Below are positions 36,484 through 60,954 of a DNA stretch of 64,000 nucleotides, one piece after another. Made by a program: the position numbers and the translations under genes. Numbering within the stretch: position 1 is the stretch's first letter; every line of letters begins with the position of its first letter. A model generated the notes under the pieces. That model saw only the letters and a list, made by a program, of their open reading frames with translations. It was not told where the DNA came from and made no database searches. Source of the stretch: Setoptus koraiensis (Eukaryota > Animalia > Arthropoda); NCBI GenBank assembly GCA_048013815.1, contig CM106586.1, positions 2,170,001 through 2,234,000 of the forward strand, given 5' to 3'.

Positions 36484-37879
36484 TTAAGCAAAACAAAATT
36501 GAAAGAAAAGATAATAAAAGATAGCAAGGATTCGAAGATTTCCTGCAGTTGCATTAGTGCTCAACAGTTTATTTGTTGCCGGACAGGAATCAATCTGCAA
36601 AGAACAGGTGAATCAGCAAGCTGCAATATCCTCTCTATATCTCTCACTTGATTTTTGGTGCGGAAAGATCTTTCGAACAATTTGTTGCAATTATTGAATG
36701 ATTGTCGAAACAAGATGTTACTGAAAGATACCAATATTTGTAATAAAGCTTGTTCAATTTAGCTTGTTCAAAGTTACTTAGCCAATGGGTAAAAATGCGC
36801 GACGATATTGAATTTTGTCGAGACCATATGTAGAGATATCATAGTTGTCCAGTAACTGTTAGCAATGCGTTTGAAGGGAATTTGTTTGAAAAAACTTGTT
36901 AGCTTAACGGAAATGAAATGATGTCCCGTAATTCCTCATGATAAGTACTGTTGTGAAGCCGTTCAGACGTACAATGTATTGTAGAGTCACTTTTGTTTAA
37001 CAACTATGATTGATAACTTGTTGTTGTATTCTAAACATAGAACAATTGAACAGTATAATACTTTAATAATGTTTGATGTTGATTAAATATTTCCAACTTA
37101 ACTATTGTTATCTTATAGCTGAACAATGATGTCACCATGTTCAATAAAACAAGTCTTGAATTTACGCTACACGACAATATAGTCATTTCACTTAAAAATA
37201 ACAAAGATTATAACCTTTCATGTCACACTTATGACATGACAAATTCTAGTGGATAGTCTAGTTGATTTGAATAAAAGATGAAACATTCAGCCGATAGGCT
37301 TGTCGCAATGTATATTTGATGTGGAACAATAGATGATTGTAGACAAACAAGCTATGACGTTCGTCCTGTTAATCTATTGAAATATCCCTCTATAAAAGCA
37401 CCTAGGACAGCAACCAAAACAAACCTTTCTCTGAACAAAATATTGATATATCGGACTTAAGGTACGCTGAACGTAGATGACTAACATTCTCTGTGATCTT
37501 TTTGTTGATTCACTTGGTTAGTATTTAGTCATCTGGTCTAGTCTTAGACAAATCAACAGCAGGATAAAGCAATAGATTACCAGGCATTACCAGAGTGAAC
37601 TCTTTTGATACAAACTTGTTGTGCTCAAGTCGGAGTACAGTGAGAGAGCCGAGAATGCGAGATTTACTTTCTATTTGAATATGGGTATGTTTGAGTAACT
37701 AGACAAAGAGGGTTAGATCAAGAGGAAAAATCGGTACATGCCATACCAATTTTTGCACTACCTCTTGATACATTTCTCTGGCCATTGACTGAACAACAAC
37801 GGTATACAACACCATGGAACACACATACAAAACTGCTCCTGCTATCTATTCATCGCAATACCACCTGCTCCCTTTCCAT
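36484..37879 (-). other. Possible multi-exon gene with very short exons and introns, ending in a hydrophobic tail; not in the ORF track
   Basis: Segments 36989-36909, 36855-36778, 36720-36648 and 36594-36484 join in frame across GT-AG gaps of 53, 57 and 53 nt. Further exon-like segments lie upstream, up to an ATG at 37879. No family recognised. Confidence 0.3.
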
Positions 37880-38264
37880 GAGTGCTGTAATTCTTGATTT
37901 CTAGTGATTGATTCTCGCTTTAGCTCGCTTGATTTTTGCTTGATAATTAAGTCAGAATTTGGCTCAAGCATGGAGGTAATAATGTTGCAAGACTGTGCTT
38001 AATTGCTTCAAGTGCTGTCGCTCTCATCAACTAATAATGAGAACACACAGGCAAAGCAAATCATTTGTACGGGTTTGATGTGGAACAAGTAAAACGAGCA
38101 AATCCAAACGAGCTGCTACTTTTTACGCATACACTTTATGTCACGATTTTTTTCTTGCTGTTGGGTCTCTACTATCAGTACTATAGAGCCAAGATAAATG
38201 AGTATATGAATACCGAGGGCATTATAATCAATAGAAATTTGGTCGTCACACGGCCATGCTTTGC

Positions 38265-38938
38265 ATGTTCAATCAATTGAAAGGTTTCTCACAGCGTAAA
38301 CTGAATAAAGTTGAGACAAAAGTAGTAACACCATCAGGTGAGAATTTAGTTGAAAAAAGAGGAGCAAAAGGCCTGCAAGTGCTATCTAGCGATGCTCAAG
38401 GTCAAGAAGAACAAAGAAAGCTAGACTTGCAAGTTGGACTTATAGTACCCGGCTTGTTGATAGGTAAATATCTATTCTCTATTATATAATTGCAAATCAA
38501 AGCTAGCAAACCATGAGTGACTAACTAGTTAATTATCATTTCTCCGGTAATATAGCATCCGATGATGTTGCTCAACACAAGGAAAGTCTGGATACTTATG
38601 GAATAACTCATATATTGAACCTGGCTAGCGATGTTGAAAATAAATATGCTAGTGAATATTGTTACAAGAATGTAGACGTTCAGGACAATCCTGATTTTCA
38701 GTTGTCTCAAGTATACGACGAATGTTTCAATTTCATAGATGAGGGGAAAAAAGCAGGTAATGTTCTTGTTCATTGTAAGGGAACAGTTGGTTTGTCGAGA
38801 TCAACTGCAATCTGTGTTGCCTACTTAATGAAAAGAGAGAAGCTCAACTTTAACGATGCTCTAAACGCCGTCAAGGAGGCAAGATCCTTCGTGCGACCCA
38901 ATGATGGATTCGTGAAACAGTTGAAGGAAGCGCATTAA
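38265..38938 (+). CDS. DUSP19: Atypical dual-specificity phosphatase, DUSP19-like; exons 38265 (or 38256)-38463 and 38556-38938
   Basis: N-terminal LKGFSQRKLNKVETKVVTPSG and DLQVGLIVPGLLI are typical of DUSP19; GITHILNLA, DECFNFIDEG, VLVHC..SRS, AYLM, RPNDGFVKQL; 92-nt phase-1 intron. Confidence 0.88.
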
Positions 38939-39159
38939 AGAGGACTTGTAAGAATCGATGATTTATTCTATCAACAATATTCATGTCGGACAATATTAAC
39001 GTGAAATTGTGTGTCTATATGACTTTCAAAAATGTGTTAGAAATTTATGCAACAATAAAGTACAAAACCAGTGTAATACACTAGTGATGTTAAGAAGGTG
39101 ATTAATCAATGCAGTAATAATACTGATTAGTTTCGACGATTATCGACGTGACGATTGAT

Positions 39160-39525
39160 TGAAAAGAGCGGTACAAACCCGGGAGGGAAAAGTGGGAGCC
39201 TCCCGAGGGGAGGGCAACTCCCCACCTCCGACGATAGATATGGCCAGAATTGCTTATGAATTGCCCGCCATTAGCAACTTGCGCGCATGCTCGGACGTGG
39301 CGATTCTCAGGGCTCGCCCATGGTCGACTTGGGCGTGCCCGTTCAAAATGGACATCGAATGCGCACAAGATATTTTGACAACGAAATTCTCTGAATATGC
39401 GCAAAAGACGAAAATTGGTTCAATAGTTCCATTGGTCAGTGTTGAGAACAACGGAACTTTTGAATTTAGCGGCTACGTCTGCGCATATAGCGAGAGGCAA
39501 ACTTGCGATCATTATGGTACCCAAT
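39160..39525 (-). ncRNA. Candidate structured non-coding RNA (family unassigned)
   Basis: GC-rich island in AT-rich DNA with nested helices: ATATGCGCA 39395-39403 / TGCGCATAT 39480-39488, GACG/CGTC, TTCAA/TTGAA, AGTTCCATTG/CAACGGAACT, and a GC hairpin at 39191-39225. Confidence 0.35.
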
Positions 39526-39750
39526 ATCGCGTATAAAAATAGTAACGGTCAATTGTGTGAATTTGAATATTTATCTAATTTTTACTATTCAACAATAGTA
39601 ATCAGGACAGGCATTTCATTTTAGAAATCGTTCAATATAACTAATTGACATATCAACAATCAATAATTATCATCTCCCCTGACAAGCATCCGATAGATAA
39701 GCTAATTTGACTAAATACTAACATAATTAATAATAAATAAAAAAATAAAT

Positions 39751-40170
39751 ATGACTCTAGAAACAAAGGAACAAGTGACCGCTGTAGAGCAACCAACAGC
39801 CACCGACGAACAAACTGAACAGACAAATGACACTCAACAAGTAAAGTCATCGCCCGCTCAAAAATTCTGGGCCAAATTACTAAAGAAGGGTCCTACCCAA
39901 AGCCCCGCAGTCAAGGCAGCTAAAGCCGCGAAAGCCGCAGCAAAAGCCGCTGACGATGCAGCTAAATCAGCTGCTGTTGCAAGGAAGGCTGCTGACGATG
40001 CAGCTAAGGCCGCCACTGCCGCTGCTAAAGCAGAAGAGGAGGCCAAAAAAAGGGAAGAAGAGCAGCTAAGGCAACAAAAAGAGCAGCAAGAAGAACAACA
40101 GAAGCAACAAGAGGCACAGCAGACCGAGCAACCCACCAAGGTTGAAGTGACACCTCAGCCCACCGAATGA
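39751..40170 (+). CDS. Small Ala/Lys/Glu/Gln-rich predicted helical protein (139 aa), unknown function
   Basis: Clean ATG-to-TGA ORF after an A-rich leader; repeated KAADDAAK and KAAKAA motifs with varied codon third positions; no recognisable domain. Confidence 0.7.
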   Translation: MTLETKEQVTAVEQPTATDEQTEQTNDTQQVKSSPAQKFWAKLLKKGPTQSPAVKAAKAAKAAAKAADDAAKSAAVARKAADDAAKAATAAAKAEEEAKKREEEQLRQQKEQQEEQQKQQEAQQTEQPTKVEVTPQPTE

Positions 40171-40441
40171 GATCAACACTGAATGTCCATAACAACCACG
40201 CATTTTATACACCATTTTCAATCAATAATCAACATGTAAATCAGCGTATTAATATCTACAGGACATCAATAAATTGACCATGACACTATGATTTTATACC
40301 AATATTATTACCTGACATTATATTCTGATACAATAGACGCAGAGCACATTTTAATCGCATTCGTGTATCTCCTACTTGACTTCAACATATTTATTCTCGA
40401 ATGTAGTACCTTAATGCACTGGTTTGTTGAAAATCAACTAG

Positions 40442-42367
40442 TTACAAGAAATGTAGCTTGTTTCTGAGCCGGGCATGTGGGGCCTGTTTCAGGTGGTCCC
40501 CCACCAAGCGGACTAATTTCGTGGCATACTGACACGGAGCTGGTACGCTCATGAAATCTCTATTGAAGTAAATTTGACACAGTTTCAAAGCAAGATCTTG
40601 ATGCTCTGTTACACCATACTTCGTCTCATCCAGAGCTACTCTGTACAAAGTCGGATTGACAAACCGTCTATCTGATTTCGCGCTCGTCATTAAGAATCCC
40701 TTCGAAATTTCCCGCGAATCTATAACAGTTCCAGCTACAGAATTCTCTACCTTAGCATCAGCGTCCACTTGTGGTACATATTTGAAAAATCTCGCTGAAT
40801 TATTTCTATCAACGTGTACTATAGATAACAAAATCCTCAGGCTTGCATGCCATTTCTCCAGAGTAGGCTTCAAGATTTCAAGAAGCTTGTCAGGATTGTA
40901 ATGTTTCATAATACCCTTAACTCTCTTATTCTCCTCATAGTACAATATGATCTTATGAGGAACCAATGAGTTTTCATTTCTATATCTTGCAACTGCCAAA
41001 CTCACAAATTTTGCCACGAGACTCAACAGAGAGCACTCGTCAAAATTTGGCTCCGCGTCGGAATACCATTTCGTCAAATTAGCATTTAGAGACGAACAGA
41101 ATGCTATGGAGTATTTATATGGTAACCTATTCCGATCACAGTGTAAAGCGAAAGAGCATACTATCATATGACGAGGTAAACTCTTCAGAGACCATGGTTC
41201 GGCCCCGGTTTTAGCCGCAATTTGAATTGCGACTCGTTCCAATAAGCCTTTTGAACTCTCAGAGTTTTGTGCGAGACTTTTCAATGATTGTATTTTGATG
41301 ACTTGCGATGGGACTCCCTTGACAACGGTAAGCAGCTTCTTTATACTATCATACCTTTCTTTCTTATCTGAAGGTACAACGATGAGTACGAGAGAGCATT
41401 GATCTATGTTGAGGAGTGTTCGGATGGTTGAATCCAGCGACCCAATTGATCTAAAATTCTCAACTTCCGAATATGTACATTTGTATGTAAAACCTAAATG
41501 TTCTAACATTTTGGGTAGGTCAAACTTAACAAATTCTTTTAACAGAATATCCATTTCTTTATAAGTAACAATTGTTAGATTACCAACGATCGCTCTACCA
41601 GGAGTGAAAGCTCGAGGGGACATACAGTTGTCAATGTTCAATCTACAATCTTTTTTCATGGTGCCAAGACGTTTGACATCTAGTATGCAAGAAGACACTG
41701 TGATTAGTTGGCCATTTTTTGTCGAACAGCCGTTCTTCTGATTCGTGGGTCTAAAATTGTTTAGCCCATAAAGCGATTCCTGGATAGTTTCATAGAACTT
41801 TTTAATAGACTCAAATTCTTGCGAGGCACTAGATCTTGCTGATGGATACTGTCTGTCTAGTAGACCCAATAAAAAGCAAAATTCCGGTATTAGATAGATA
41901 GGATTTGTAGTTGAGTTTATAGACTTCCCATATTCCTTCACCAGAAGAAGAGGTTGACACGTACTTCGATTACTCAATTTAATGTTGTATTTGGCTTCTA
42001 AGTAATTTTTGAACGAGACAACAAGACCATCTTTTGTAGTGAATTCTGAGAAAGGAGTTTTTGTACAGTCGACATCTATAATTTTATAGATTTTGTTATT
42101 GTACAATGTAACAACTTTTTTGTGTCTTAAAGTTTCTTTTATGTGGATCCGAAAGAGGTTTATGGCGACTCTCTGAAATATTTCAACCATGAAATATTCG
42201 CAAGAGTATTTTTGCACGTACAATACCCTAGGTGTAATACTAACTTGCGCACCATGACGTATAACGGATAGTCCATCTACAACATCAATTCCAAACTTGT
42301 GACATATAGTTCGTAGTGATTTAAAGTCGAAATAGTCTCCATGAAGTTTGTTCCACAAATTATACAT
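40442..42367 (-). CDS. Divergent PIWI-clade Argonaute (partial L1, PAZ, MID, PIWI), single ORF of 641 aa; 5' end probably cut by the assembly artefact
   Basis: PAZ: VVTLYNNKIYKI.DVD..KTP.SEF, SFKNY...KYNI, QPLL, YLIPEFC.L.GL. MID: RYDSIKK..VPSQV, QIAAKTG.EPW. PIWI: GTVID, VNPTLY, SVPAPCQYA.KL, LRNKLHFL C-terminus typical of the PIWI clade. Confidence 0.92.
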   Translation of the reverse strand: MYNLWNKLHGDYFDFKSLRTICHKFGIDVVDGLSVIRHGAQVSITPRVLYVQKYSCEYFMVEIFQRVAINLFRIHIKETLRHKKVVTLYNNKIYKIIDVDCTKTPFSEFTTKDGLVVSFKNYLEAKYNIKLSNRSTCQPLLLVKEYGKSINSTTNPIYLIPEFCFLLGLLDRQYPSARSSASQEFESIKKFYETIQESLYGLNNFRPTNQKNGCSTKNGQLITVSSCILDVKRLGTMKKDCRLNIDNCMSPRAFTPGRAIVGNLTIVTYKEMDILLKEFVKFDLPKMLEHLGFTYKCTYSEVENFRSIGSLDSTIRTLLNIDQCSLVLIVVPSDKKERYDSIKKLLTVVKGVPSQVIKIQSLKSLAQNSESSKGLLERVAIQIAAKTGAEPWSLKSLPRHMIVCSFALHCDRNRLPYKYSIAFCSSLNANLTKWYSDAEPNFDECSLLSLVAKFVSLAVARYRNENSLVPHKIILYYEENKRVKGIMKHYNPDKLLEILKPTLEKWHASLRILLSIVHVDRNNSARFFKYVPQVDADAKVENSVAGTVIDSREISKGFLMTSAKSDRRFVNPTLYRVALDETKYGVTEHQDLALKLCQIYFNRDFMSVPAPCQYATKLVRLVGDHLKQAPHARLRNKLHFL

Positions 42368-42406
42368 ATCCTCTCACAAACAACAAAGAGAAAGAAAAGA
42401 AGAGAT
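42368..42406 (+). other. Degraded PacBio SMRTbell hairpin adapter (technical sequence)
   Basis: atcctctcacaaacaacaaagagaaagaaaagaagagat aligns to the adapter ATCTCTCTCAACAACAACAACGGAGGAGGAGGAAAAGAGAGAGAT (recalled from memory) and lies exactly at the fold-back axis. Confidence 0.88.
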
Positions 42407-45400
42407 ATGTATACATGATTGAACAAAACTTCATGGACTATTTCGACTTTAAATCACTACACTATATGTCACATTTGAATTGATGTTAATGACTATCCGT
42501 TATACGTCATGTGCGCAAGTATATACACCTAGGTATTGTACTGCAAAAATAATCTTCGAATATTTCATGTTGAAATATTCAGAAGTCGCCATAAACCTCT
42601 TTCGATCCACATAAAAAAACTTTAAACACAAAAAAGTTTACATTGACAATAACAAAATCTATAAAATTAAGATTCACTGTACAAAAACTCCTTCTCAGAA
42701 TTCACTACAAAGAGGTCTTGTTTCTCGTTCAAAAACTTAGAAGCCAAATACAACATAAATTATAATCGAAGTACTGTCAACCTCTTCTTCGTGAAGGAAT
42801 ATGGAAGTCTATAAACTCAACTACAATCCTATCTATCTAATACCGAATTTGCTTTTTATTGTCTACTAACAACAGTATCCATCAGCAAATCTATCCTCCA
42901 AAATTTGAGTCTATTAAAAAGTTCTATAAACTATCCAAATCGCTTTATGCTAACAATTTAGACCCACGAATCAAAGAACGCTGTTCGACAAAAAATGCCA
43001 ACTAATCACAGTGTCTTCTGCATACTAGATTCAAACGTCTTGCACCATAAAAAAGATTTAATTGAACATTGACAACTTAGTCCCCTCGACTTCACTCTGT
43101 AGAGCGATCTTGTAATCTAACAATTTTACTTATAAAAATGATATTCTGTTAAAAGAATTGTTAAGTTTGACCTACCCAAAATGTTAGAACATTTAGGTTT
43201 TACATACAAATGTACATATCGGAAGTTGAATTTTAGATCAATTGGTCCGATCAACCATCCGAACACTCCTCAACATAGATCAATCTCTCTCGTACTCATC
43301 TTGTACCTTCAGATAAGAAAAAAGTATGATATATAAAAAGCGCTTACCTTGTCAAGAGTCCCATCGCAAGTCATCAAATACAATCATGAAAATCTCGCAC
43401 AAAACTCTAAGTCAAAAGCTTATTGAACGATGCCAATTCAAATTGCGCTAAACCGCCGAACCATGCTCTGAAGAGTTTACCTCGTCATATGATAGATCTC
43501 TTTCGCTTACACTGTGATCAATAGTACCATATAAATACTCCATAGCATTCTGTTCGTCTCTAAATGCAATTGACGAAATGTATTCCGACGCGACCAAATT
43601 TGACGAGTGCTCTCTTTAGTCTCTCAAAATTTGTATTCATTGCAAGTATAAAATAAAACTCTTGTCCTCATAAATCATATTGTACTATGAGAAATAAAGA
43701 TTAAGTATTAGAAACATTACAATCCTACAACTTCTTAAATCTTGAAGCCTACTCGAAATGCATGCAAGCCTAGATTTTGTTATACTATATACACGTTTGA
43801 TAAAATATTCACGAGATTTTTCAAATATTACCACAAGTGACCTGATCTAAGTAAGAAATGTCTGTACTGGAACTGTTATAGATCGCGAAATTTCGAAGGA
43901 TGCTTATGACGAGCGCGAAATCAGATAACGTTTTCAATCCGACTTGTACAATACTCTATGAACAATATGTTAACAGACATCAAATCTTGCTTTGAAACTG
44001 TGCAAATTTACTTCAATAAGATTTCATACGTACCAGCTCCGTTCATATGCCACGAAATTATCCGCTGTGGTGACCACCTGAAACAGCCCCACATCCCGCT
44101 CAGAACAACTACATTTCTTGTAACTAGTTATTTTCAACAAACCAGTCATTAAGTACTACATTCGAGAATAAATATGAGTCATGAATACACAATCATTAAA
44201 AATGTCTCGCTCTATTGTATCAGAATATAATGTCAGTAATAATATTGTATAAAATCATATGTTATTCAATTTATTATGTCCTGTAATATTAATACGCTTT
44301 ACATGCTGATTATTATTGAAAATGTATAAAATCTGGTTTTATGACATTCATGTTATCCATCGTGCTGAGTTCCTGCAACGTGTGGTTGCTCGTCTCTGTC
44401 CTCTTTTGCTTCTTGTTCTCTTGCTCTCTTTTGTGCCTTAGCTGCTTCTTCCCTTTTTTGGCACTCCTCTTCTGCTTAGCACGGCATGCACCGTACTGCA
44501 TCTCAGCACCTCCTTCACAGCAGCTGATTTACTGCATCGCACCTTTTGCTGCGCTTCGCGCTTTAGCTGCCTTGACGCGGCTTTGGGAGACCCTTCTTTA
44601 TAATTTGCCCAGAATTTTGACGCGATGACTTACTTGTTATGTCATTTGTCTGTTTCATTTGTTCTCGTGCTGTTGTTGCTCTACAGCGTCACTTGTTCCT
44701 TTGTTTCTAGAGTCATATTTATTTTTTATTTATATCATTTATGTTATATTTATCAATTACTTATCGATCGATGCTTGTCATGAGAGATTAGTATTGTTGA
44801 TATGTCAATATCATATTGACGATTCTAAAATAAATCCTGTTCTATTACTATGTTAATAGTAAAAATTAGATAAATATTCAAATCACACAATGACCGTACT
44901 ATTTTTATACGATATGTACCATATGATAGCAATTTGCCTCTCCCTATAGCCAACGTACCGCTAAATTCAAAAGTTCCGTGTTCTCACACGGACCAATAAC
45001 TATTGAACCAATTTTCGTCTTTTGCGCATATGTAAGAATTCGTTGTCAAATATCTTGTCCATTCATGTCCATTTGAACGCACCCCAATCGACCATGGCGA
45101 CCCTGAAATCGCCACGCCGAGCATGCCCAAGTTGCTAATGCGCATTCATAACAATTTTGCCATACTATCGTCGAGTGGATTCCCTCCCCTCGAGCTCCCA
45201 CTTTTCCCTCCCGTTGTACCGCTCTTTTCAATCAATCGTCACATCGATAATCGTCGAAACTAATCAGTATTATTACTGCATTGATTAATCACCTTCTTAA
45301 CATCACTAGTGTATTACACTGGTTTTGTACTTTATTGTTGCATAAATTTCTAACACATTTTTGAAAGTCATATAGACACACAATTTCACGTTAATATTGT

Positions 45401-46938
45401 CCGACATGAATATTGTTGATAGAATAAATCATCGATTCTTACAAGTCCTCTTTAATGCGCTTCCTTCAACTGTTTCACGAATCCATCATTGGGTCGCACG
45501 AAGGATCTTGCCTCCTTGACGGCGTTTAGAGCATCGTTAAAGTTGAGCTTCTCTCTTTTCATTAAGTAGGCAACACAGATTGCAGTTGATCTCGACAAAC
45601 CAACTGTTCCCTTACAATGAACAAGAACATTACCTGCTTTTTTCCCCTCATCTATGAAATTGAAACATTCGTCGTATACTTGAGACAACTGAAAATCAGG
45701 ATTGTCCTGAACGTCTACATTCTTGTAACAATATTCACTAGCATATTTATTTTCAACATCGCTAGCCAGGTTCAATATATAGTTATTCCATATATCCAAC
45801 TTTCCTTGTGTTGACAACATCATCATGCTATATTACCGAAAATATAATTAACTATTATCACTCATTTTGCTAGCTTTGATGCAATTATATAAAGAATAAT
45901 ATGTACCTATCAACAAGCCGTACTATATATCCAACTGCAATCTAGTCTTGTTCTTCTGACCTTACATCGCTAATATACGTGCACCTTTGCTCCTCTTTTT
46001 TCAACTAAATTCTCACCTGATGTGTACTACTTTTGCTCACTTTATCTTTACGCTAAAACCTGTCAATGATTAACACAAAGTATCGTGTACGACAAGTTCT
46101 ATTGATTATAATGCCCTCTATTCATATACTCTTTATCTTGGCTCTATATACTGATATAGAACCCAACAGCAAAAAAAATCGTGACATAAATGTATCTAAA
46201 AATAGCAGCTCGTTTTGATTTGCTCGTTTTACTTGTTCCACATCAAACCCGTACAAATGTTTGCTTGCTGTGTTCTCATTATTAGTGAGACGACAGCACT
46301 GAACAATTAACACATCTGCAACATTATACCTCCATCTAGCCCAATTCTACTAATTATCAACAAAAATCAACGAGCTAAAGCAGAATCAATCACGAAAATC
46401 AAAATTACAGCACTCATGAAAGCAGTGATTCATGAATAGATACAGAGCAGTTTTGTATGTGTTCCATGTGTGTATACCGTGTTGTTCAGTCAGCCAAAAA
46501 TTATCAAAAGGTATCAAAAGTGGTATGCATACCGATTTTCCTCTTGAACTAACCCTCTTTGTCTATTACTCAAACATACCCATATTCAATAGAAATAAAT
46601 CTCGCATCCGCTCTCTCACTGTACTCCGACTTGAGCACAACAAGTGTATCAAAATTCACTCTGAATGCCTGTAATCTATTCTTATCCTGCTGTATTTGTC
46701 TAAGACTAACCAATACTAAATACTAACCAATAAATCAACAAAAGATCACAGAGAATTATCATCTACGTCACGTACCTTATAGTCCGAGAGATGCAAGATG
46801 TTTTCAGAGAAAGTATGTTTGGTTCTGGCCGAGCTTTTATAGAGGATATTGCAATAGTAGTACACGACGACTCATAGCGTGTGCTACAATCATCTATTTG
46901 CCACAGCAATAGATACATTGCTCACAGTATGTATACAT
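42407..46938 (-). repeat. Error-rich inverted copy of about 37300-42367 (second pass of the same read); includes a polished copy of DUSP19 exon 2 at about 45452-45830
   Basis: Colinear reverse complement of the PIWI, Ala/Lys ORF, GC island and DUSP19 region; about 10% shorter through single-base deletions, mostly of G. Confidence 0.93.
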
Positions 46939-46974
46939 AGCCTCTCTACCACAACATCGAATTAGAGATGAGAT
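46939..46974 (+). other. Second, more degraded SMRTbell adapter remnant
   Basis: agcctctctaccacaacatcgaattagagatgagat at the second turning point, flanked like the first by TATACAT and ATGTATA. Confidence 0.7.
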
Positions 46975-49900
46975 ATGTATACAATATACAATGTATATGA
47001 TGTGAACAATAGAGATGTAAAGACATATCAACTATGACGTCGTAATCCCGTTAATCGATTAAAGATCCTCTATAAAAGCACGACCTAGTACTGCAACCAA
47101 ACAAACCTGCTCTGATAACAAAGATTGATATATGACGTAAGGTAGCCGCTGAACGAGATGACTAACATTCTCTGATACTTTTGTTGAGCACTGTGTTAGT
47201 ATATATCTCTGTCTCGCGTAGACAAATCTACAGCAGAGAAAGCAAGAGATTACCAGCATTACCACAGTAACTCTTGTGATACAAACTTTGTGCTCAATCG
47301 AGTACAGAAGACCGAGAATCAGATTTACTTCTATTTAATATTATGTTATAACTAACAAAAGGTTAGATCAGAAAAAATCGTAAATGCATACCATTTTGCA
47401 CTACCTCTTATACATTTCTCTGCCATGACTGAACAACAACGTATACAACACCATGAACACACCATACAAACTGCTCCCTCTATCTATTCATCGCAATACC
47501 ACCTGCTCCCTTCATGAGTGCTGAATTCTGATTCTAGATGACTCCGTTACTCCCTTGATTTGCTTGATATTATCAGAATTTCTCAGCTGATAATAAGTGC
47601 AAGACTGCTAATTGCTCATCTTCGCTCTCAACTAATATAAACACACATCTAAGCAATCATTTGTACGGTTTGATTGAACAAGTAAAACGACAAATCCAAA
47701 CAGCTGCTACTTTTACGCATACACTTTATTCACATTTTTTTCTTCTGTTTCTCACTATCAGTACTATAGAGCCAATAAATAGTATATGATACCGAGCATA
47801 TATATACAATAAAATTTGTCGTCACACGCATACTTGCATTTCAATCAATGAAAGTCTCACAGCGTAACTGAATATTGAGACAAAAGTATAGACACCATCA
47901 TGAATTTAGTGAAAAAGAGACATAACCGCTATACTATCTACGATGCTCAATCAAGAAAACAAAGAAAGCTAACTTCAATTACTTATAGAACCGCTTGTTG
48001 ATAGTAAATATCTATTCTCTATTATTAATTGCCAATCAAACGACAAACCATGATACTAACTATTATTATCATTTCTCCGTAATATACATCCAATTTGCTC
48101 AACACAAAAATCTGATACTTATGATACTCTATATTGAACCTGCTAGCGATTTAAAATAAATATCTAGATATTGTACAAAATGTAACGTCAGAACATCCTA
48201 TTTCAGTGTCTCAGATACACGAATTTCAATTCATAGATGAGAAAAAGCATATGTTCTTGTTCATGTAAGGACATTGTTTCGAATCAACTCAATCTGTGCC
48301 TACTTAATATAAAAGACTCAACTTTACGATCGCGTCTAAACGCCGTCAAGAGCAAGATCCTCGTGCACCCAATATGATCGGAAACAGTTGAAGAACGCAT
48401 TATAAGACTTGTAAGAATCGATGATTTATGTCTATCAACAATATCATGTCGACAATATTAACGAATTGTGTCTATATGACTTTCAAATGTGTTAGAAATT
48501 TATGCAACAATAAAGTACAAAACCATGTAATACACTAGTATTGAAGAAGTGATTAATCAATGCAGAATAATACTGATATTTCGACGATTATCTACTGACA
48601 TTAGTGAAAAAGCGTACAAACCCGGAGGAAAGTGAGCCTCCCAGAGCAACTCCCCACACTCGACATAGATATGGCCAAAATTGCTTATGAATCGCCCCCC
48701 ATTACAACTTGCGCGCATGCTCGACTGCGATCTCAGCTCGCCATGTCGACTTGCGTCCCGTTCAAAATGGACATCGAATGCCACAAGATATTTGACAACG
48801 AAATTCTCTAAATATGCGCAAAAGACGAAAATTGTTCAATAGTTCCATTGGTCAGTGTTGAGAACAAACGAACTTTTGAATTTAGCGCTACGTCTGCGCA
48901 TATAGAGAGGCAACTTCGATCATTAGTACCCAATATCGCTATAAAAATATAACGTCAATTGTGTAATTTGAATATTTATCTAATTTTATTATTCAACAAT
49001 AGTAATCAGAACAGCATTTCATTTTAGAAATCGCTCAATATGACTAATTGACAGATCAACAATCAATAATTATCAGCTCCCCTGACAAGCATCCGATAGA
49101 TAAGCTAATTGACTAATACTAACATAATTGATAATAAATAAAAAAAAATATGACTCTAAAACAAAGGAACAATGACCGCTGTAGAGCAACCAACAGCCAC
49201 CGACGAACAAACTGAACAACAAATACACTCAACAAGTAAAGTCATCGCCCCTCAAAAATTCTGCCAAATACTAAAAAGGTCCTACCCAAACCCCGCAGTC
49301 AAGCACTAAACCGCGAAAGCCGCAGCAAAAGCCGCTGACGATGCACTAAATCACTGCTGTTGCAAGAAGCTGCTGACGATGCAGCTAAGGCTGCCACTGC
49401 CGCTGCTAAAGCAAAGAGAGCCAAAAAAAGAAGAAACACTAAGGCAACAAAAAGACAGCAAGAAGAACAACAAACAACAAGAGCACAGCAACCGACAACC
49501 CACCAAGGTTGAAGTGACACCTCAGCCCACCGAATGAGATCAACACTGAATGTCCATAACAACCACCATTTTATACACCATTTTCAATCAATAATCAGCA
49601 TTAAACGTATAATATCACAACATCATAAATGACCATAACACTATGATTTTATACCAATATTATTACCTGACATTATATTCTATACAATAACGCAGACACA
49701 TTTTAATCGCATTCGTATCTCCTACTTGACTTCAACATATTTATTCTCGAATGTATACTTTAATGCACTGTTTTGTTGAAAATCAACTAGTTACAAAATG
49801 ACTGTTTTCTGACCGCATTGCCTTTTCAGGTGGTCCCCCACCAAGCGACTAATTTCGTGCATACTGACACGGAGCTGGTACGCTCATGAATCTCTATTGA

Positions 49901-51502
49901 AGTAAATTTGACACAGTTTCAAAGCAAATCTTATGCTCTGTTACACCATACTTCGCTCATCCAGACTACTCTGTACAAAGTCGGATTGACAAACCGTCTA
50001 TCTGATTTCGCCTCGTCATTAAATCCCTTCGAAATTTCCCCGCAATCTATAACATTCCACTACAATTCACTACCTTAGCATCACGTCCACTTGTGGTACA
50101 TATTTGAAAAATCTCGCTAATTATTTCTATCAACGTTACTATAGATAACAAAATCCTCACTTGCATGCCATTTCTCCAGGGAGACAGAGCACGAGGTAGC
50201 TTCAAATTCAAGAACTTGTCAGATTGTAATTTTCATATACCCTTAACTCTCTTATTCTCCTCATAGTACAATATGATCTTATGAGAACCATGATTTTCAT
50301 TTCTAAATCTTGCAACTGCCAAACTCACAATTTTGCCACGAACTCAACAGAAGCACTCGTCAAAATTTGCTCCGCTCGGAATACCATTTCTCAAATAGCA
50401 TTAGAGACAACAGAATGCTATGAGTATTTATATGTAACCTATTCCATCACAGTGTAAAGCGAAAAGCATACTATCATATGACGAGTAAACTCTTCAGAGA
50501 CCATGTTCGCCCCGTTTTTAGCCGCAATTGAATTGCACTCGTTCCAATAAGCTTTGAACGCTCAGAGTTTTGTGCGAACTTTTCATGATTGTATTTTATG
50601 ACTACGATGACTGTCCTTGACAAACGTAACAGCGTCTTTATACTATCATACCTTTCTTCTGTATCTGAAGTACAACATGAGTACGAGAAGCATGATCTAT
50701 TAGAGAGTTCGATGGTTGAATCCACGACCCAATTGATCTAAAATTCTCACTTCCAATATGTACATTGTATGTAAACCTAAATTTCTAACATTTTGGTAGT
50801 CAAACTTAACAAATTCTTTTAACAGAATATCCATTTCTTTATAAGTAACAATTGTTAGATACCAACGATCGCTCTACAGTGAAGCTCGAGACATACATTC
50901 AATTTCAATCTACAATCGTTTTTCATGGTGCCAAACGTTGACATCTAATCAAGAAACACTGATTATTGCCATTTTTGTCAACACCGTCTTCATCTAGGTC
51001 TAATTGTTACCCATAAACGATTGCCTGATATTTCATAAACTTTTATAGACGCAAATCTTCGACACTAATCTGCTGATGATACTTCTTCTATAGACCCAAT
51101 AAAAACAAAATTCCGTATTAGATAATAGATTGTATAGTTTAGACGTCCCATATTCCTTCACAAAAAGTACACTACTTCATTACTCAATTAATGTATTTCT
51201 CTAAGGAATTTTAACGAACACAAACCATCTTTGTAGTGAATGCGAAAAGAGTTTTGTACATCGACATCTATAATTTTATAGATTTGTATTGTACAATGTA
51301 ACAACTTTTTGTCTTAAAGTTTCTTTAGTGATCCGAAAGAGTTATGCACTCTCTGAAATATTTCAACCATGAAATATCGCAAGAGTTTTTGCACGTACAA
51401 TACCCTAGTGTAATACTAACTTGCCACCATACGTAAACATATCCATCTACACATCATCCAAACTTTACAATAGTTCTTGATTGATCAAATTCTCCATAGT
51501 TT
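46975..51502 (+). repeat. Error-rich direct copy of about 37300-42345 (third pass)
   Basis: Colinear with the clean copy, frameshifted throughout, same deletion bias, and ends at almost the same position as pass 1. Confidence 0.93.
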
Positions 51503-52001
51503 NNNNNNNNNNNNNNNNNNNNNNNNNNNNNNNNNNNNNNNNNNNNNNNNNNNNNNNNNNNNNNNNNNNNNNNNNNNNNNNNNNNNNNNNNNNNNNNNNN
51601 NNNNNNNNNNNNNNNNNNNNNNNNNNNNNNNNNNNNNNNNNNNNNNNNNNNNNNNNNNNNNNNNNNNNNNNNNNNNNNNNNNNNNNNNNNNNNNNNNNNN
51701 NNNNNNNNNNNNNNNNNNNNNNNNNNNNNNNNNNNNNNNNNNNNNNNNNNNNNNNNNNNNNNNNNNNNNNNNNNNNNNNNNNNNNNNNNNNNNNNNNNNN
51801 NNNNNNNNNNNNNNNNNNNNNNNNNNNNNNNNNNNNNNNNNNNNNNNNNNNNNNNNNNNNNNNNNNNNNNNNNNNNNNNNNNNNNNNNNNNNNNNNNNNN
51901 NNNNNNNNNNNNNNNNNNNNNNNNNNNNNNNNNNNNNNNNNNNNNNNNNNNNNNNNNNNNNNNNNNNNNNNNNNNNNNNNNNNNNNNNNNNNNNNNNNNN
52001 N
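51503..52001. other. Assembly gap (about 500 N)
   Basis: Run of N. Confidence 1.
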
Positions 52002-52003
52002 NC

Positions 52004-55000
52004 GGAAACAAAGGTATTGATGACGATGATGACGATGATGATAACGATGGTACCGCTGATGACGATGATGATGATGACGATGACGCAGCAGATATAGTTG
52101 TGAACAAGAGAAAAGTCAAATCTACAACATCTAATAACAAAGCGAGACAGAAAGGATCAACAGCAAAGAAACAACCAAAGGTGGATGACGATGACGACGA
52201 TGATGACGAAGATGACGACGATGAAGATGAAATTATTGAGGACATATCAGATGCTGAGACTTTGAACAAACTGATTGAGGCAAACGATCATTTGATGGTG
52301 TTCTTTTATGACAAAGAAGACCCAAAAATATTTCAAAAAGCTAGTGATATTCTCAAACAATTAGAAACAATCGATGATGATTGTGATGACTATGATATTG
52401 GCTTTGTTAAAATCGACAATGATCAGGTGGCTAGAGAGTTTGGCCTTATGGATGAATTGCCGGCTTTGGTCTACTTTGAACATCAGTTGCCCTCAATCTA
52501 CGAAGGTAGTTATAAACCTGTTAGCCAGGTATTGGATTGGATACTAAAGCAAAAAAGTGAAGACACTATAGAAGAGGTAACTGATGAGATTTTAGAAAAA
52601 TTATTACTGAAACATCCTTATGTTCTAGTATTCTTCGCGCCAAACTCTTGTACAACAGAATGTGAAATCATTTTACAAGGTCTAGAGAGTATTGACGATG
52701 ACACAGATGATTACGGTATTTTGTTTGTTACGACAGACGATATGGATCTAGCTAGAAAGAGGGCCAAAATAACCAAATTTCCTACTTTGGTTTTATTCAG
52801 AAACAATGGTGACTCTAAAACATATAAAGGAAACTTAAAGAAACCGGATGAAGTTTTAAAATGGGTCACATCAGAAGAGGCGCTAGACATAACAAATGCG
52901 ATTGATCTGGTTAATAGGAAGATGTTTGAAAAGTTATTAAATACATCCAACTATTTAGCAGTTGTTTTCATCAAGGACAAATGTAAGAATTGTGACAAAG
53001 TTTTACAAACATTGGAGAATATTGATCATTTAACCGAGGATAACGATATAGATTTGATTAAGATCAATGACGTTAAATTGGCTCGCGAGTTCAACTTGGT
53101 AGACAATTCGCTGCCTGCATTAGTATTCTTTAAACATCGTTACCCTCATATATATCAAGGTAATCTGTTGGCAAAAGACGCTGATCAACAAGTGTTGAAA
53201 TGGTTGAACGAAGAAAAAAATAATCAAGAGGATATCATCGAGTTAGTATCGGGTAATATGTTGGATATTTTATTGGACAACATGAAACATTTGGTTGTAT
53301 TCTTCTATGATCCGAAATTGTGCGGTCAAGATTCATCGTCCATTGTTAATGCCCAGCAACAGGCTGCAAATCTAAAGTGCAAAAGAGTATTACAAGAACT
53401 GGAAAATATAGACGATGAAACAGATGATAATGGTATACAATTTGTCAAATGCGAAGACACTAAATACGCTAAATCGTTGGGTATTAGTCAGTTGCCAGCA
53501 CTTGTTTATTTCGAAGAATCATCATCGGCTCCAAGTATCTACTTAGGTGATCTGGAGGAGGAGGAGAGAGTCTTGGAATGGTTGCTGAAGCAAAAAAATG
53601 AGGACACTATTGAGAACATTAATAAGGATATACTGAATAAAATGATAACCCAACAACAGAAAGGTACCGACGGCGATGGCGATGAAGACGATGATGATGT
53701 TCAAAAGGAATATGTAGCGTGTTTATTTTACAAATTAAATCACGAAGATAGCGATGATATTGTTGAAACATTGGAACATATCGACGATGATCTGAGTGAA
53801 TATGACATCCATCTTGTCAAAATGGCCGACGATTTGATAGCAAAAAAATATGGTATTCGTCATCCACCGGGGCTGGTATTGTTTCGTCATGGTCTACCTC
53901 TCAAGTACGAGGGCGATCTATTCGATACCGATGAGCTAATAGAGTGGCTGACGAATCCATCAACATTGGAAACTAATGATGCTATAGAGCAGGTTAATGA
54001 AAAAATGTTTGAAAGATTCAGAGTGAACACAAACTATTTGGCTGTTTTGTTTTACAGTGAAACAAATGCTTGCAAGCAATGCAAAAGAGTAATGGAGGAA
54101 CTGGAGAAAATCGACGACGAAGCCAGTGCGGCTGGTATCAGATTCATTAAGGTGGACAATATGGATATCGCGCGCCGTTATGGAATTCACGCTCTTCCAG
54201 CGTTGGTATTCATATCAACGCCATCAGCAACAACATCGACCAATATTGGACAAGATCAGAGTCAGGCTATAATATATGCTGGTGATTTGAAGAAGGGCGA
54301 TAAGATACTAGAATGGCTAATGGAACAAAAGTCGCCCAATCTTCATCAAATCGAAGATTTAAACGGACGCCAATGTAGAGAATTGATCAAATCAAGAGAG
54401 CATGTGGCTATATTCTTTTACAACAATGACAACGACGAAGATTCAACGGATGATTGCGATGATCAATGTGCTATTATATTGGCTGGTCTAGAAAATATTG
54501 AGGGTGATTGTAAAAAGCATTCGATTACTTTGGTTAAAACAAATGATAAATCTATGCTGAAAGAATACGGTATTCAGCGAGATGCAGCATTAGTTTACTT
54601 CGAGCATGGCAATCAGCCTAGCATCTATCAGGGCGATTTGAATGCTGAAGAAGATTGTCTCGATTGGCTGATTCAGCAAAAAACAGAGGACACAATTGAA
54701 GAAGTTAACAGGGGATTATTTGAGCATCTAATTGAATCAAGTCACTATTTGGTTGCATTATTTTACAAGCCACATTGTAAATCTTGTACGGTTGCTTTGG
54801 AGAAACTAGAATCTATTGATGATGATTGTGACCTGTATGGTATCACTATGGTCAAGATACAGGATATACCATTGGCTAAACGATACGGTATTAAGACATT
54901 TCCAGCCTTAGTCTATTTCCGCAATGGGAATCCATTAATATTTGATGGTGATCTTCGTAATGAGCAGCAGGTACTAGAGTGGTTAATTGAGGATGAAAAC

Positions 55001-56008
55001 CGTGAATTAAGTGACGAAATCGAGGATATAAATGGAAAAATGTTGGACAAATTAATAGATTCTTCACCATTTTTGGCAGCCTTATTCTACGATGACGACT
55101 GTCAAGAGTGTCCTAAAGTACTGCGTGAACTGGAGAAAATAGACGATGACACTGATCTGTTTGGCATTGATTTCGTTAAAATTAATGACTTTGCTGCGGC
55201 TAGAAAATACAATGTTCATTCGTTTCCGACACTGGTTTACTTTAGAAAACAATCGCCATCCTATTACGACGGTGATCTTTTAGACGAGGACAGTGTATTG
55301 AGATGGTTGACCAGTAATGACGTGTTTGAGTTAGAAGATGAAATAGAAGAGGTCAATAGGCGCATGTTGGACAAATTAATGGAAACTAATGATTACATCG
55401 CAGTTTACTTTTGTGAGTACCAATTGAACATTTACATATCGATAGAGATATCTGCATCTAGTGCTCCAATTAATTAATTAATTTATTCCTTCATCACACT
55501 AATATGAAAAAACTTGAAATCAGATGACAAAAATTGCCCCACTTGTGATGTCATACTCAAAGAACTCGAGGGTATAGATGATGAAGCAGACAGTCTTGAC
55601 ATTATGTTTGTCAAAATTAAAGATATGAATTATGCCAAAAAATACGGTATAACTCAGGTGCCTAGTTTAGTTTATTTTAGGAAGAAATTTCCATCCATTT
55701 ACAGAGGTAGGTCAACAACAAACAGTTTTAGATTGATTGCGACTAAAATTTACTTATAGATGTTACCTTGATTATCACATTATTACTTACTCACACCAAC
55801 TTACATCACATCTCAATCATATCATCCATCTTATTATATCTTTGTAGGCGATTTAATGAGAGAGGAGAAAGTATTAGAATGGTTGCGCAAGAATAGATAC
55901 CGCAATCCAGAATTAAATTTGTTTATGTACGCATTGTTCAGCATAACAATATCATTTATTTTTTACACAATATTCCTAATGTTTTGTGTCAAAAAGAAAC
56001 AAGAGTAA
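52004..56008 (+). CDS. Acidic membrane protein with at least 10 tandem thioredoxin-like (PDI/calsequestrin-type) domains and a C-terminal TM helix; 5' end in the gap; exons <52004-55412, 55524-55706, 55848-56008
   Basis: Repeat unit IE.V...L..L....YL.V.FY...C..C...L..LE.IDDD.D..GI..VK.....A..YGI...P.LVYF....P..Y.GDL..E..VL.WL; phase-1 GT-AG introns; ends ..ELNLFMYALFSITISFIFYTIFLMFCVKKKQE*. Confidence 0.9.
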
Positions 56009-58810: not shown

Positions 58811-60623
58811 TTACATATCTAGTTTCATTGTTGATCGAACATCATCGATTTTCAAAATCATCTTCACAAGTTGAGTGGCAAGGCTGATTTGTTGTTGTTT
58901 GCTACTCAGAGTTTCTATGACATTAAGTTTCTTCATATCATTTGAGCCGGTAGACATGCAGTCCACTCCTATGTGGGGGTTGTTCTCAGCTACCTGTTGG
59001 GCCTTAATGCTCTGGACTGTCTCAATACCATGCAGACCAGAGTTTTCGGCTAATGACATTGGAATAGATTCTAATGCATCGGCGAACGCTCTAAAGGCAT
59101 ATTGTTCCAAAGATGAAATCTTATCTGCTTCTTTTGTAATTGCTAAACTGCAGGATAATTCGGCGGAGCCACCCCCATAGACAATACGGTTGTCACGGAT
59201 TAAGTTTCTTACAACGCAGAGAGCGTCATTGAGACTTCTCTTAGCTTCGTCAACAACCATCTGGTTTCCGCCTCGAATAAAAACTGTAACTGCTCTGCTA
59301 TTCTTGCAGTCCTCTATAACTAACATGCGATCTCTCGTTGTTCCAAAGTTAAGTTCACGTACGATTCCTGCGTAACCTAGTTTTTCAGGTGTTAGTTCTT
59401 CGAATCTAGGGACGATGCGACCGCCAGTCGCAATTGCAATCAGTTCGATCTCTGGACCTCCAACCCATCGAATAGCGGGCAATTCTTTCTGCAAGAGCAA
59501 ATGGTTTGCTTCATCATCGAAGCCCCATTGACATATAGCTAGATTGGCTCCGACTTTCTTTACCTGGTCGACCATTTCAACGAACTTTTCCTGCTCATAC
59601 TTTCTTAACTTTCTGTAATCTTCAACTGAGGTGACATCCAACTTGTGTTTGGTCTTTGGTTTAGGTGGTTCGAATGGGCATGTGAGTATTGCCATCCTTA
59701 CATTCTCTAATCTTTTCGGCATCTGTGGATGGCTGAAATCTTTGTCCACAATGACACCTTTGACGAGCATTGTATCTTCCATCTGACCTCCGGTTTTCGT
59801 TTCTATTTTGATAAGTTCAAAATCTACATCCCGACGATTCATGTCAGCAACTGACAAAATAGCGTCAACTGCAATTTCGGCGAACTGCCTCAAGCAACGG
59901 CTGACAATCTTAGAGCCGAGTGAGGTCATAGCTGCCTTGATCAGTGGCTCTTTGTTACTGTCATCCACTGGAAAGCTGTCACAAACGCTTTGCAGGTGTT
60001 GAACCGCGTGTTGAGCTGCCATCTCAAATCCATCAGCGATTCTGATTGGGTGAAGTCCTTTGTCGAGTAAGATTTCGGCCTGTTCAAGTAGAGCTCCAGC
60101 AAGAACTTTTTGTGGAGAAAATTATTAATGAATCAGATTCATGGAAATTAATTTTAGGCCATCAAATGAATCAAATAGGCATGCTAGCTAAGTTGGTTGC
60201 GAGACTAACCTACAACTCCGGTGGTTCCATCACCTATTTCATCATCTTGTGATTTTGACAGTTGCACCATCAACTTTGCTATTTCGTGGTCAACATCCAT
60301 ACATTTTAATATGGTGGCGCCATCGTTTGTTATGGTCAAATCTCCATCTGGTGAGACCATGATCTTATCCAAACCTTTGGGGCCCAAAGATGTCTTTAAG
60401 ACTTCAGCTACTCGTTTGGCAGCATATATGTGGGACTAATTTCAATAAGAATTAATGTTAGTGGATTATGGCCAAGAAACTCCCTTAAATAGTCGATTTC
60501 TATTGATGAAAAACCTACTTTTGTGGCATCGATACCAGTGAGTTGTCTTTGTTTTTCCTGGTCCCTGAGAATGAAAAATGGTCGACCATGTTCATCGAAC
60601 GCTAATTGTCCAACAGCAGCCAT
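58811..60623 (-). CDS. CCT5: T-complex protein 1 subunit epsilon; exons 60623-60519, 60435-60210, 60105-58811
   Basis: [48 protein letters not shown]|[33 protein letters not shown]; introns of 83 and 104 nt with matching phases. Confidence 0.98.
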
Positions 60624-60954
60624 TGTTTGAGCCAACCGATGTAACAAATTAATTAAATACTGATGGAACTTGAATGTAACTTGTGTAATTGTTTTGCCTA
60701 CCAAAATAATGATACCAAAGAGACTATTATATACTACCAGTGGTAATATCACACCAATATAGCATGCAAGCGGCATGGACAGGATGCTTTGTTGATACGC
60801 CCTCTACCGGTTGCACTTGATATGAAGAGCGGTAAAGTCAAACTGAATCAATGTGCCGCAGTTGAACAGATTCACGAATATAGACTTTATTTACAAAAAT
60901 ATCACAAGCATTAACTCGTAGATTGGTCAGTATCGACAGATGAAATTAAAAATA

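Follow-up and report, generated by a model that had tools for sequence, protein, structure and literature searches.

A PIWI protein predicted to hold guides without slicing in the mite Setoptus koraiensis, and an unsplit PacBio read at the 5' end of its gene

Drosophila Piwi and mouse MIWI2 act in nuclear transcriptional silencing independently of slicing, through guide binding and the recruitment of partners, and both keep their catalytic residues and an N-terminal nuclear localization signal. We analyzed a PIWI-clade open reading frame (ORF) of 641 codons (positions 40442 to 42367, minus strand) in a 64,000-nucleotide stretch of Setoptus koraiensis DNA, referred to here as the window. A functional model like that of Drosophila Piwi and MIWI2 is proposed for its product, but the catalytic residues are lost and the N terminus is not in the window. 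Siwi of Bombyx mori, MIWI/PIWIL1, and MILI resemble the S. koraiensis protein in their L1-PAZ-L2-MID-PIWI architecture, fold, MID pentad, and C-terminal end. They differ from it in carrying an N domain and an N-terminal tail, neither of which is present in the window, and in the DEDH catalytic tetrad, all four residues of which are replaced in the S. koraiensis protein, at an overall identity of 19 to 22% in structural alignments.

A closer context is provided by the Acari, from which PIWI-family Argonautes without DDH are already known (Nganso et al. 2020, PMC7659050). In Tetranychus urticae, DDH is present in only four of six PIWIs, and the PIWIs of other mites show variants, SRG and NDH among them (PMC7659050). 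The present protein is less unusual than the initial annotation of this DNA had assumed, PIWIs without DDH being known in several Acari (PMC7659050): the kind is established there, and the protein is an extreme case within it. Piwi-like protein 4 of Halotydeus destructor (P0011, reading DEVY) and P0022 (reading DADR) fall in the same 16-sequence clade as the query, keep YKQQK in the MID domain, and have an incomplete catalytic center. Among the 107 homologues aligned here, the DDH-lacking Acari PIWIs retain at least the first Asp, whereas the query has lost it, and its branch is four to five times longer than those of these mite relatives. For the eriophyoid mite Aculops lycopersici, the published account describes an expanded PIWI/AGO3 subfamily, with several PIWI paralogues, together with piRNA-pathway factors, and its passages on small-RNA pathways are silent on catalytic residues (PMC7738191). 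No orthologue of the query gene was found in the protein libraries searched.

Domains, fold, and phylogenetic position

The stop codon of the ORF (40442 to 40444, minus strand) directly follows the conserved C-terminal LHFL, and the coding part verified by reads, residues 7 to 641, occupies 40445 to 42349 on the same strand. A PAZ domain, described as recognizable in the initial annotation, spans residues 60 to 173 (41849 to 42190, minus strand; Pfam PF02170, E 1.4e-16). The Pfam Piwi domain, which takes in the MID end and the RNase H-like PIWI domain, spans residues 326 to 627 (40487 to 41392, minus strand; PF02171, E 1.2e-28) and matches the model over its full length, positions 1 to 302. 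Among solved structures, the best sequence matches are the PIWI-clade proteins PIWIL1/MIWI (9s0z, 8e-41), Siwi (5guh, 1e-36), and Drosophila Piwi (6kr6, 3e-36), and the top eleven full-length PDB sequence matches all belong to this clade (E 8e-41 to 3e-31).

Structural prediction agrees with this assignment. An AlphaFold2 model of the ORF, built on an alignment of 80 sequences, is confident (mean pLDDT 85.9, pTM 0.87), and its best fold matches in Foldseek are Siwi, MILI, HILI, EfPiwi, and MIWI (E 1e-44 to 1e-37, TM approximately 0.75), with Siwi first (5guh_A; E 1e-44, TMq 0.76). The top 18 fold matches are of the PIWI clade, and human AGO1 and AGO2 rank after them. On the basis of sequence and model together, the ORF product is a genuine member of the PIWI-clade Argonautes, complete with a PAZ and a Piwi domain.

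The N domain (Piwi_N or ArgoN), corresponding to the approximately 150 to 300 N-terminal residues of all relatives, is not in the window, and the sequence upstream of 42349 is an assembly artifact, as set out below. A tblastn comparison of the window with a full-length mite PIWI gave no further match, and no N-domain coding sequence was found past the scaffold gap.

Relatives of the protein are distant. A word-based protein search returned one match for the whole ORF and none for residues 7 to 217, and an exact look-up of the ORF product and of one predicted contig fragment returned no match. When 1.84 billion cluster representatives were searched exhaustively, 1128 matches were obtained, none above 35% identity, with the best relative at 34 to 35%. 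The query's terminal branch in a 73-protein maximum-likelihood tree measures 3.93 changes per column, the median being 0.86. The phylogenetic comparison proposed in the initial annotation thus nests the query within mite PIWIs: it lies inside the 16-sequence clade (SH-aLRT 99), the named members of which all belong to the acariform mites (Oppia, Medioppia, Brevipalpus, and Halotydeus). The detailed placement of such a long branch is uncertain. The nearest relatives (P0002 to P0005 and P0009, at loci L001 to L004) are intronless PIWI genes encoding 814 to 858 aa on Logan contigs from four public runs (SRR33593474, SRR30952567, ERR10900071, and SRR29131048). Their catalytic positions read D, D, and H, and in the tree they make up two separate groups, beside which the query attaches; they probably represent other eriophyoid-like mites.

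Catalytic tetrad and guide-binding pockets

In RNase H-type Argonautes, loss of the first catalytic Asp removes the metal site and abolishes slicing. When the query is aligned with 107 full-length homologues, this position is occupied by F406 (41150 to 41152; this and the following codons are on the minus strand), in a column that holds D in 106 of the 107, and HMMER alignments to Siwi and PIWIL1 agree. The glutamate finger is replaced by S446 (41030 to 41032), where 84 of the 107 homologues have E and 7 have D. E478 (40934 to 40936) stands in place of the second Asp, which is D in 104 of the 107, the YRDG motif having become YYEE followed by a two-residue insertion, and T616 (40520 to 40522) takes the place of the catalytic His, present in 95 of the 107, so that YAHKL reads YATKL. 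Substitutions also affect invariant neighbors of the tetrad (G to C404, R to Y477, and G to E479, relative to the same homologues). The loss of DEDH that the initial annotation had read from the motifs CSFALH, YYEE, and YATKL is thereby confirmed against the homologue columns. The query is the sole one among the 108 sequences compared (the 107 homologues and the query itself) in which all four tetrad positions are altered; about ten of the 107 representatives lack a catalytic Asp or the His yet carry YKQQK.

Placement of the tetrad was derived from aligned sequences and from the model's secondary structure, with Siwi compared at the level of residue ranges rather than single residues. In the model, the four positions fall on the strand formed by residues 401 to 411, at the start of the helix 444 to 466, at the end of the strand 472 to 478, and in the helix 610 to 626. 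As these are the strands and helices expected for an RNase H-type center, the structural check suggested in the initial annotation lends support to the loss of slicing. S446 is the least certain of the four because E444 lies two residues upstream, and in a MAFFT alignment with ten sequences, two catalytic columns moved by one or two residues. The initial annotation had allowed that structural alignment might bring alternative acidic residues and a His into the active site; in none of the alignments did the position of the first Asp receive an acidic residue or the last tetrad position a His. With F406, S446, E478, and T616 replacing the entire DEDH center, the protein is predicted to be slicer-dead, and the prediction that it is unable to cut RNA is well supported, in line with the earlier proposal that it does not cleave targets. 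The acidic residues E478 and E444, at or near two of the tetrad positions, count against this reading.

The guide-binding pockets present the opposite picture. The 5'-phosphate pocket of the MID domain consists of Y339, K343, Q355, Q382, and K386 (41210 to 41353, minus strand), the same YKQQK as in 105 of the 107 homologues, and it accounts for the residues that the initial annotation had recognized in RYDSIKK, PSQV, and QIAAK. The columns of Y339, K343, Q355, and K386 are 99 to 100% conserved and that of Q382 is 98% conserved, while the C-terminal L638 and L641 fall in columns that are 100% and 93% conserved, respectively. Considering all columns with at least 90% conservation, the query retains 13 of 13 in PAZ and 8 of 8 in MID (together 21 of 21) versus 21 of 32 in the PIWI domain (Fisher p 0.0018), and the losses in the PIWI domain take in columns around both catalytic Asp positions. 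This contrast supports the prediction, already made in the initial annotation for guide loading, that guide binding is retained, the binding pockets having been kept and the PIWI domain selectively changed.

The same pattern bears on selection. The signs sought of a pseudogene, namely stops, frameshifts, and an even loss of conserved residues, were not found: the 635 verified codons are open, and the PAZ and MID columns are kept in full. That the frame is open at the end of a terminal branch of 3.9 changes per site supports past selection on the gene, as proposed earlier from the length of the ORF. Much change, an open frame, and untouched pockets together suggest a long history of the lineage as a translated protein that binds guides and does not slice. 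A very long branch would also fit relaxed constraint, and no RNA run containing the PIWI gene was found among the public runs searched.

An unsplit PacBio read at the contig end

Support for the sequence was assessed with Logan contigs from four public runs (X1 to X4) of four studies, of which X1 and X2 are possibly one data set filed twice and X3 probably derives from the sample assembled. Together, the contigs of the four runs cover 40300 to 42349. Those of X1/X2 show zero differences and no gaps on 40300 to 41526, which includes all four catalytic codons, and the unusual residues are therefore not consensus errors; a window-like form of the gene is also present in X3/X4. Every public contig departs from the window at 42349. 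The first six codons (42350 to 42367) are supported by none of the four runs, and no contig from these runs was found on 42444 to 44300, the part of the second copy described below that was examined.

The genome of S. koraiensis, with two chromosomes and about 47 Mb, was assembled from PacBio CLR reads with Flye 2.6 and short-read polishing into 266 contigs, and three runs were deposited in 2025 (PMC11920263). A self-similarity map of the window shows 37305 to 42367 in forward orientation, 42407 to 46921 inverted, and 46989 to 51476 forward again. Between the first two copies, at the center of the apparent palindrome, 42368 to 42406 can be aligned, with raw-read errors, to the full 45 nt of the PacBio SMRTbell hairpin adapter (sequence as given in PMC5218489). 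The score of 46 is the highest anywhere in the window, where the 99.9th percentile of the background is 33. An ungapped adapter search with up to three mismatches gave no match because the adapter copy carries indels, and it was gapped alignment that found it. A second adapter-like junction at 46942 to 46974 is a weaker match (local score 26) containing both adapter stem ends and is flanked on both sides by ATGTATACA. The four flanks of the two junctions all open with ATGTATA(C)A, and this recurrence of ATG after the adapter marks the apparent start codon as library linker. The in-frame TGA stop upstream falls within the SMRTbell adapter.

The copies differ as raw reads do. The inverted second pass of the library insert (42407 to 46921, plus strand), which resembles a decayed copy of the PIWI and DUSP genes, has 56 mismatches, 449 deletion events, and 18 insertions relative to copy 1, and 366 of the 449 deletion events are of one base. 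The third pass (46989 to 51502, minus strand) is a direct copy of 37306 to 42312, has 84 mismatches, 443 deletion events, and 21 insertions relative to copy 1, and runs up to the contig end, where a scaffold gap of 500 N follows (51503 to 52002). These differences are the error profile of raw long reads and not divergence. The approximately 9 kb from 42368 to 51502 consists of adapter and extra, unpolished passes of one PacBio CLR read and is not mite genome. A single unsplit CLR polymerase read, comprising insert, adapter, inverted insert, adapter, and insert, has lengthened the contig end in this way, and the break in the assembly lies at 42349/42350.

It follows that the "start codon," the upstream stop, and the two adjoining "decayed copies" are artifacts. 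The apparent start codon and first six codons (42350 to 42367, minus strand), opening with the linker ATGTATA, are not mite sequence or are at least unsupported. The long intact ORF of the initial annotation thus stands for the 635 verified codons, which are open, and falls for its 5' end, with an unsupported six-codon start, a linker-derived ATG, and an upstream stop that belongs to the adapter; with an artifact at its 5' end, the ORF is not complete. The PIWI-like stretches at 42436 to 44120 (plus strand) and 49821 to 51409 (minus strand) were considered as old pseudogenes, a reading under which selection could have been tested on three copies, and this was rejected, as they differ almost only by 1-nt deletions and have an adapter between them. 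For users of this region, the assembly artifact is the practically more important result, and the same cause is worth considering for other "inverted duplications" of this assembly.

Some smaller observations attach to this stretch. All ORFs in 42368 to 51502 are artifactual, including a second DUSP ORF (45452 to 45826) and the remnants of a K/A-rich ORF (44313 to 44501 and 49172 to 49537). Copy 2 contains an error-free stretch of approximately 450 nt, matching 38555 to 39054, which is probably a product of short-read polishing. The segments 37308 to 37329 and 42350 to 42367 are alike in inverted orientation (local score 30 versus a 99.9th percentile of 23.9), a resemblance that may be due to chance or to a short inverted repeat truly present where the fragment ends.

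What lies upstream of 42349 in the mite was deduced from the contig tables of X1 to X4. In X3/X4, a contig of 1111 nt opens with the 30 bases 41716 to 41745 (plus strand), followed by approximately 447 bases absent from the window and then by 42349 down to 41716 (minus strand). Its last bases are thus its first bases in reverse complement, as is characteristic of an inverted repeat. Contigs join 41794 and 42349 on opposite strands at a depth of 108 to 122. A second form of the gene is present in these two runs and is equally deep, at approximately 107 for each form and approximately 225 where the forms are identical. This form carries deletions of 58, 280, 120, and 380 nt together with clustered differences; it was rejected as a counterpart of the window's copy 2, which is without those deletions. 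In X1/X2, depth falls from 22 to 11 above 41664, and contigs join 41526 or 41664 in inverted orientation to 42349 or 42248; one of these joins passes through 169 bases absent from the window. These joins suggest that the real genome carries a 5'-truncated inverted copy head-to-head with the PIWI gene, 0.2 to 0.45 kb away (169 to 447 nt). The real gene itself may be 5' truncated. In the shortest relatives, approximately 150 residues precede the position of K7, and an N domain could therefore just fit into the 447 nt of one sample and not into the interval of the other, or it may have been lost. The verified 5' end was also sought in JGI metagenome contigs, with no match.

Explanations for the gene and neighboring features

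The explanation we prefer, which we consider probable while leaving ample room for doubt, is that of a lineage-specific, very fast-evolving eriophyoid PIWI paralogue that is slicer-dead, has kept its guide pockets, and is represented in the window by an incomplete gene model. In such a protein, the guide would be held by the PAZ pocket at its 3' end and by the MID pentad Y-K-Q-Q-K and the C-terminal Leu at its 5' phosphate. With a small RNA bound, the protein could then act without slicing, either through the recruitment of partners or through occupation or sequestration of RNA, its likely role being silencing or sequestration, whereas any slicing would fall to PIWI and AGO genes with an intact DEDH. 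It could further be speculated that a selected PIWI without N domain and slicer center forms a pure PAZ-MID guide-holding module beside a decayed inverted copy of itself, with read-through yielding a hairpin RNA that feeds or regulates it, an idea to which we would attach little credence.

A different history is conceivable, in which a long slicer-dead evolution as a PIWI was ended when a real inverted duplication cut the gene at its 5' end, leaving a young and now non-functional relic whose frame is open because the event is recent. The contigs that pass from 42349 through 169 nt (X1/X2) or approximately 447 nt (X3/X4) into the inverted interior of the gene would be expected from such an event, as would the missing N domain, the heavily deleted second form at equal depth in X3/X4, and the failure of the gene to appear in any RNA run. 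Against this, the 447 nt could barely house an N domain of the shortest kind, contigs are unable to prove absence, and over 635 codons the intact copy shows no disabling change, in contrast to the four large deletions of its partner, which points to constraint on the intact copy. We therefore treat the relic as a serious possibility and judge it on balance to be unlikely.

Two further explanations concern the catalytic residues themselves. A metal site rebuilt from E478, E444 or D443, and D411 with H409 would leave the protein an endonuclease, and it is true that E478 stands in the column of the second Asp, that E444 precedes the glutamate-finger column by two residues, and that D411 and H409 lie on the first catalytic strand. 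The last two are no substitutes, however, since most homologues have D and H in the same columns in addition to the tetrad, and a Phe at the first Asp, a Cys at the adjoining invariant Gly, and a Thr at the His make the idea highly improbable, the more so as loss of the first Asp by itself ends slicing. That the odd residues are consensus errors of a badly polished long-read assembly might be suspected from the neighboring 9 kb of unpolished raw-read sequence, but the agreement of X1/X2 on all four catalytic codons and the window-like form in X3/X4 refute it at the level of reads, and its probability is negligible.

The protein combines the most complete loss of the slicer center among the approximately 110 PIWI-clade representatives compared with full retention of the guide-binding residues. 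It could serve as a clean natural test case of a PIWI with binding only, and it comes from a group of mites whose genome is streamlined and whose PIWI family is expanded.

Other features of the window can be described briefly. On the plus strand, 39751 to 40170 is a Lys/Ala/Glu-rich ORF of 139 aa without a Pfam match. It converges on the PIWI gene, whose stop codon lies 270 nt from the end of this ORF. Beginning 98 nt past the scaffold gap, an intronless gene at 52100 to 55477 (plus strand) encodes a protein of 1125 aa with many thioredoxin-like domains, an acidic N-terminal tail, and a TXNDC16_N match. A TCP-1/CCT chaperonin subunit is encoded on the minus strand at 58811 to 60022 and 60408 to 60776. 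Its 403-aa ORF covers only positions 96 to 485 of the Pfam model, and the N-terminal part appears to lie in the ORF at 60408 to 60776, so that this gene probably bears an intron. The long neighbors of the CCT gene are intronless, for example the PRP6-like gene of 944 aa at 60955 to 63789.
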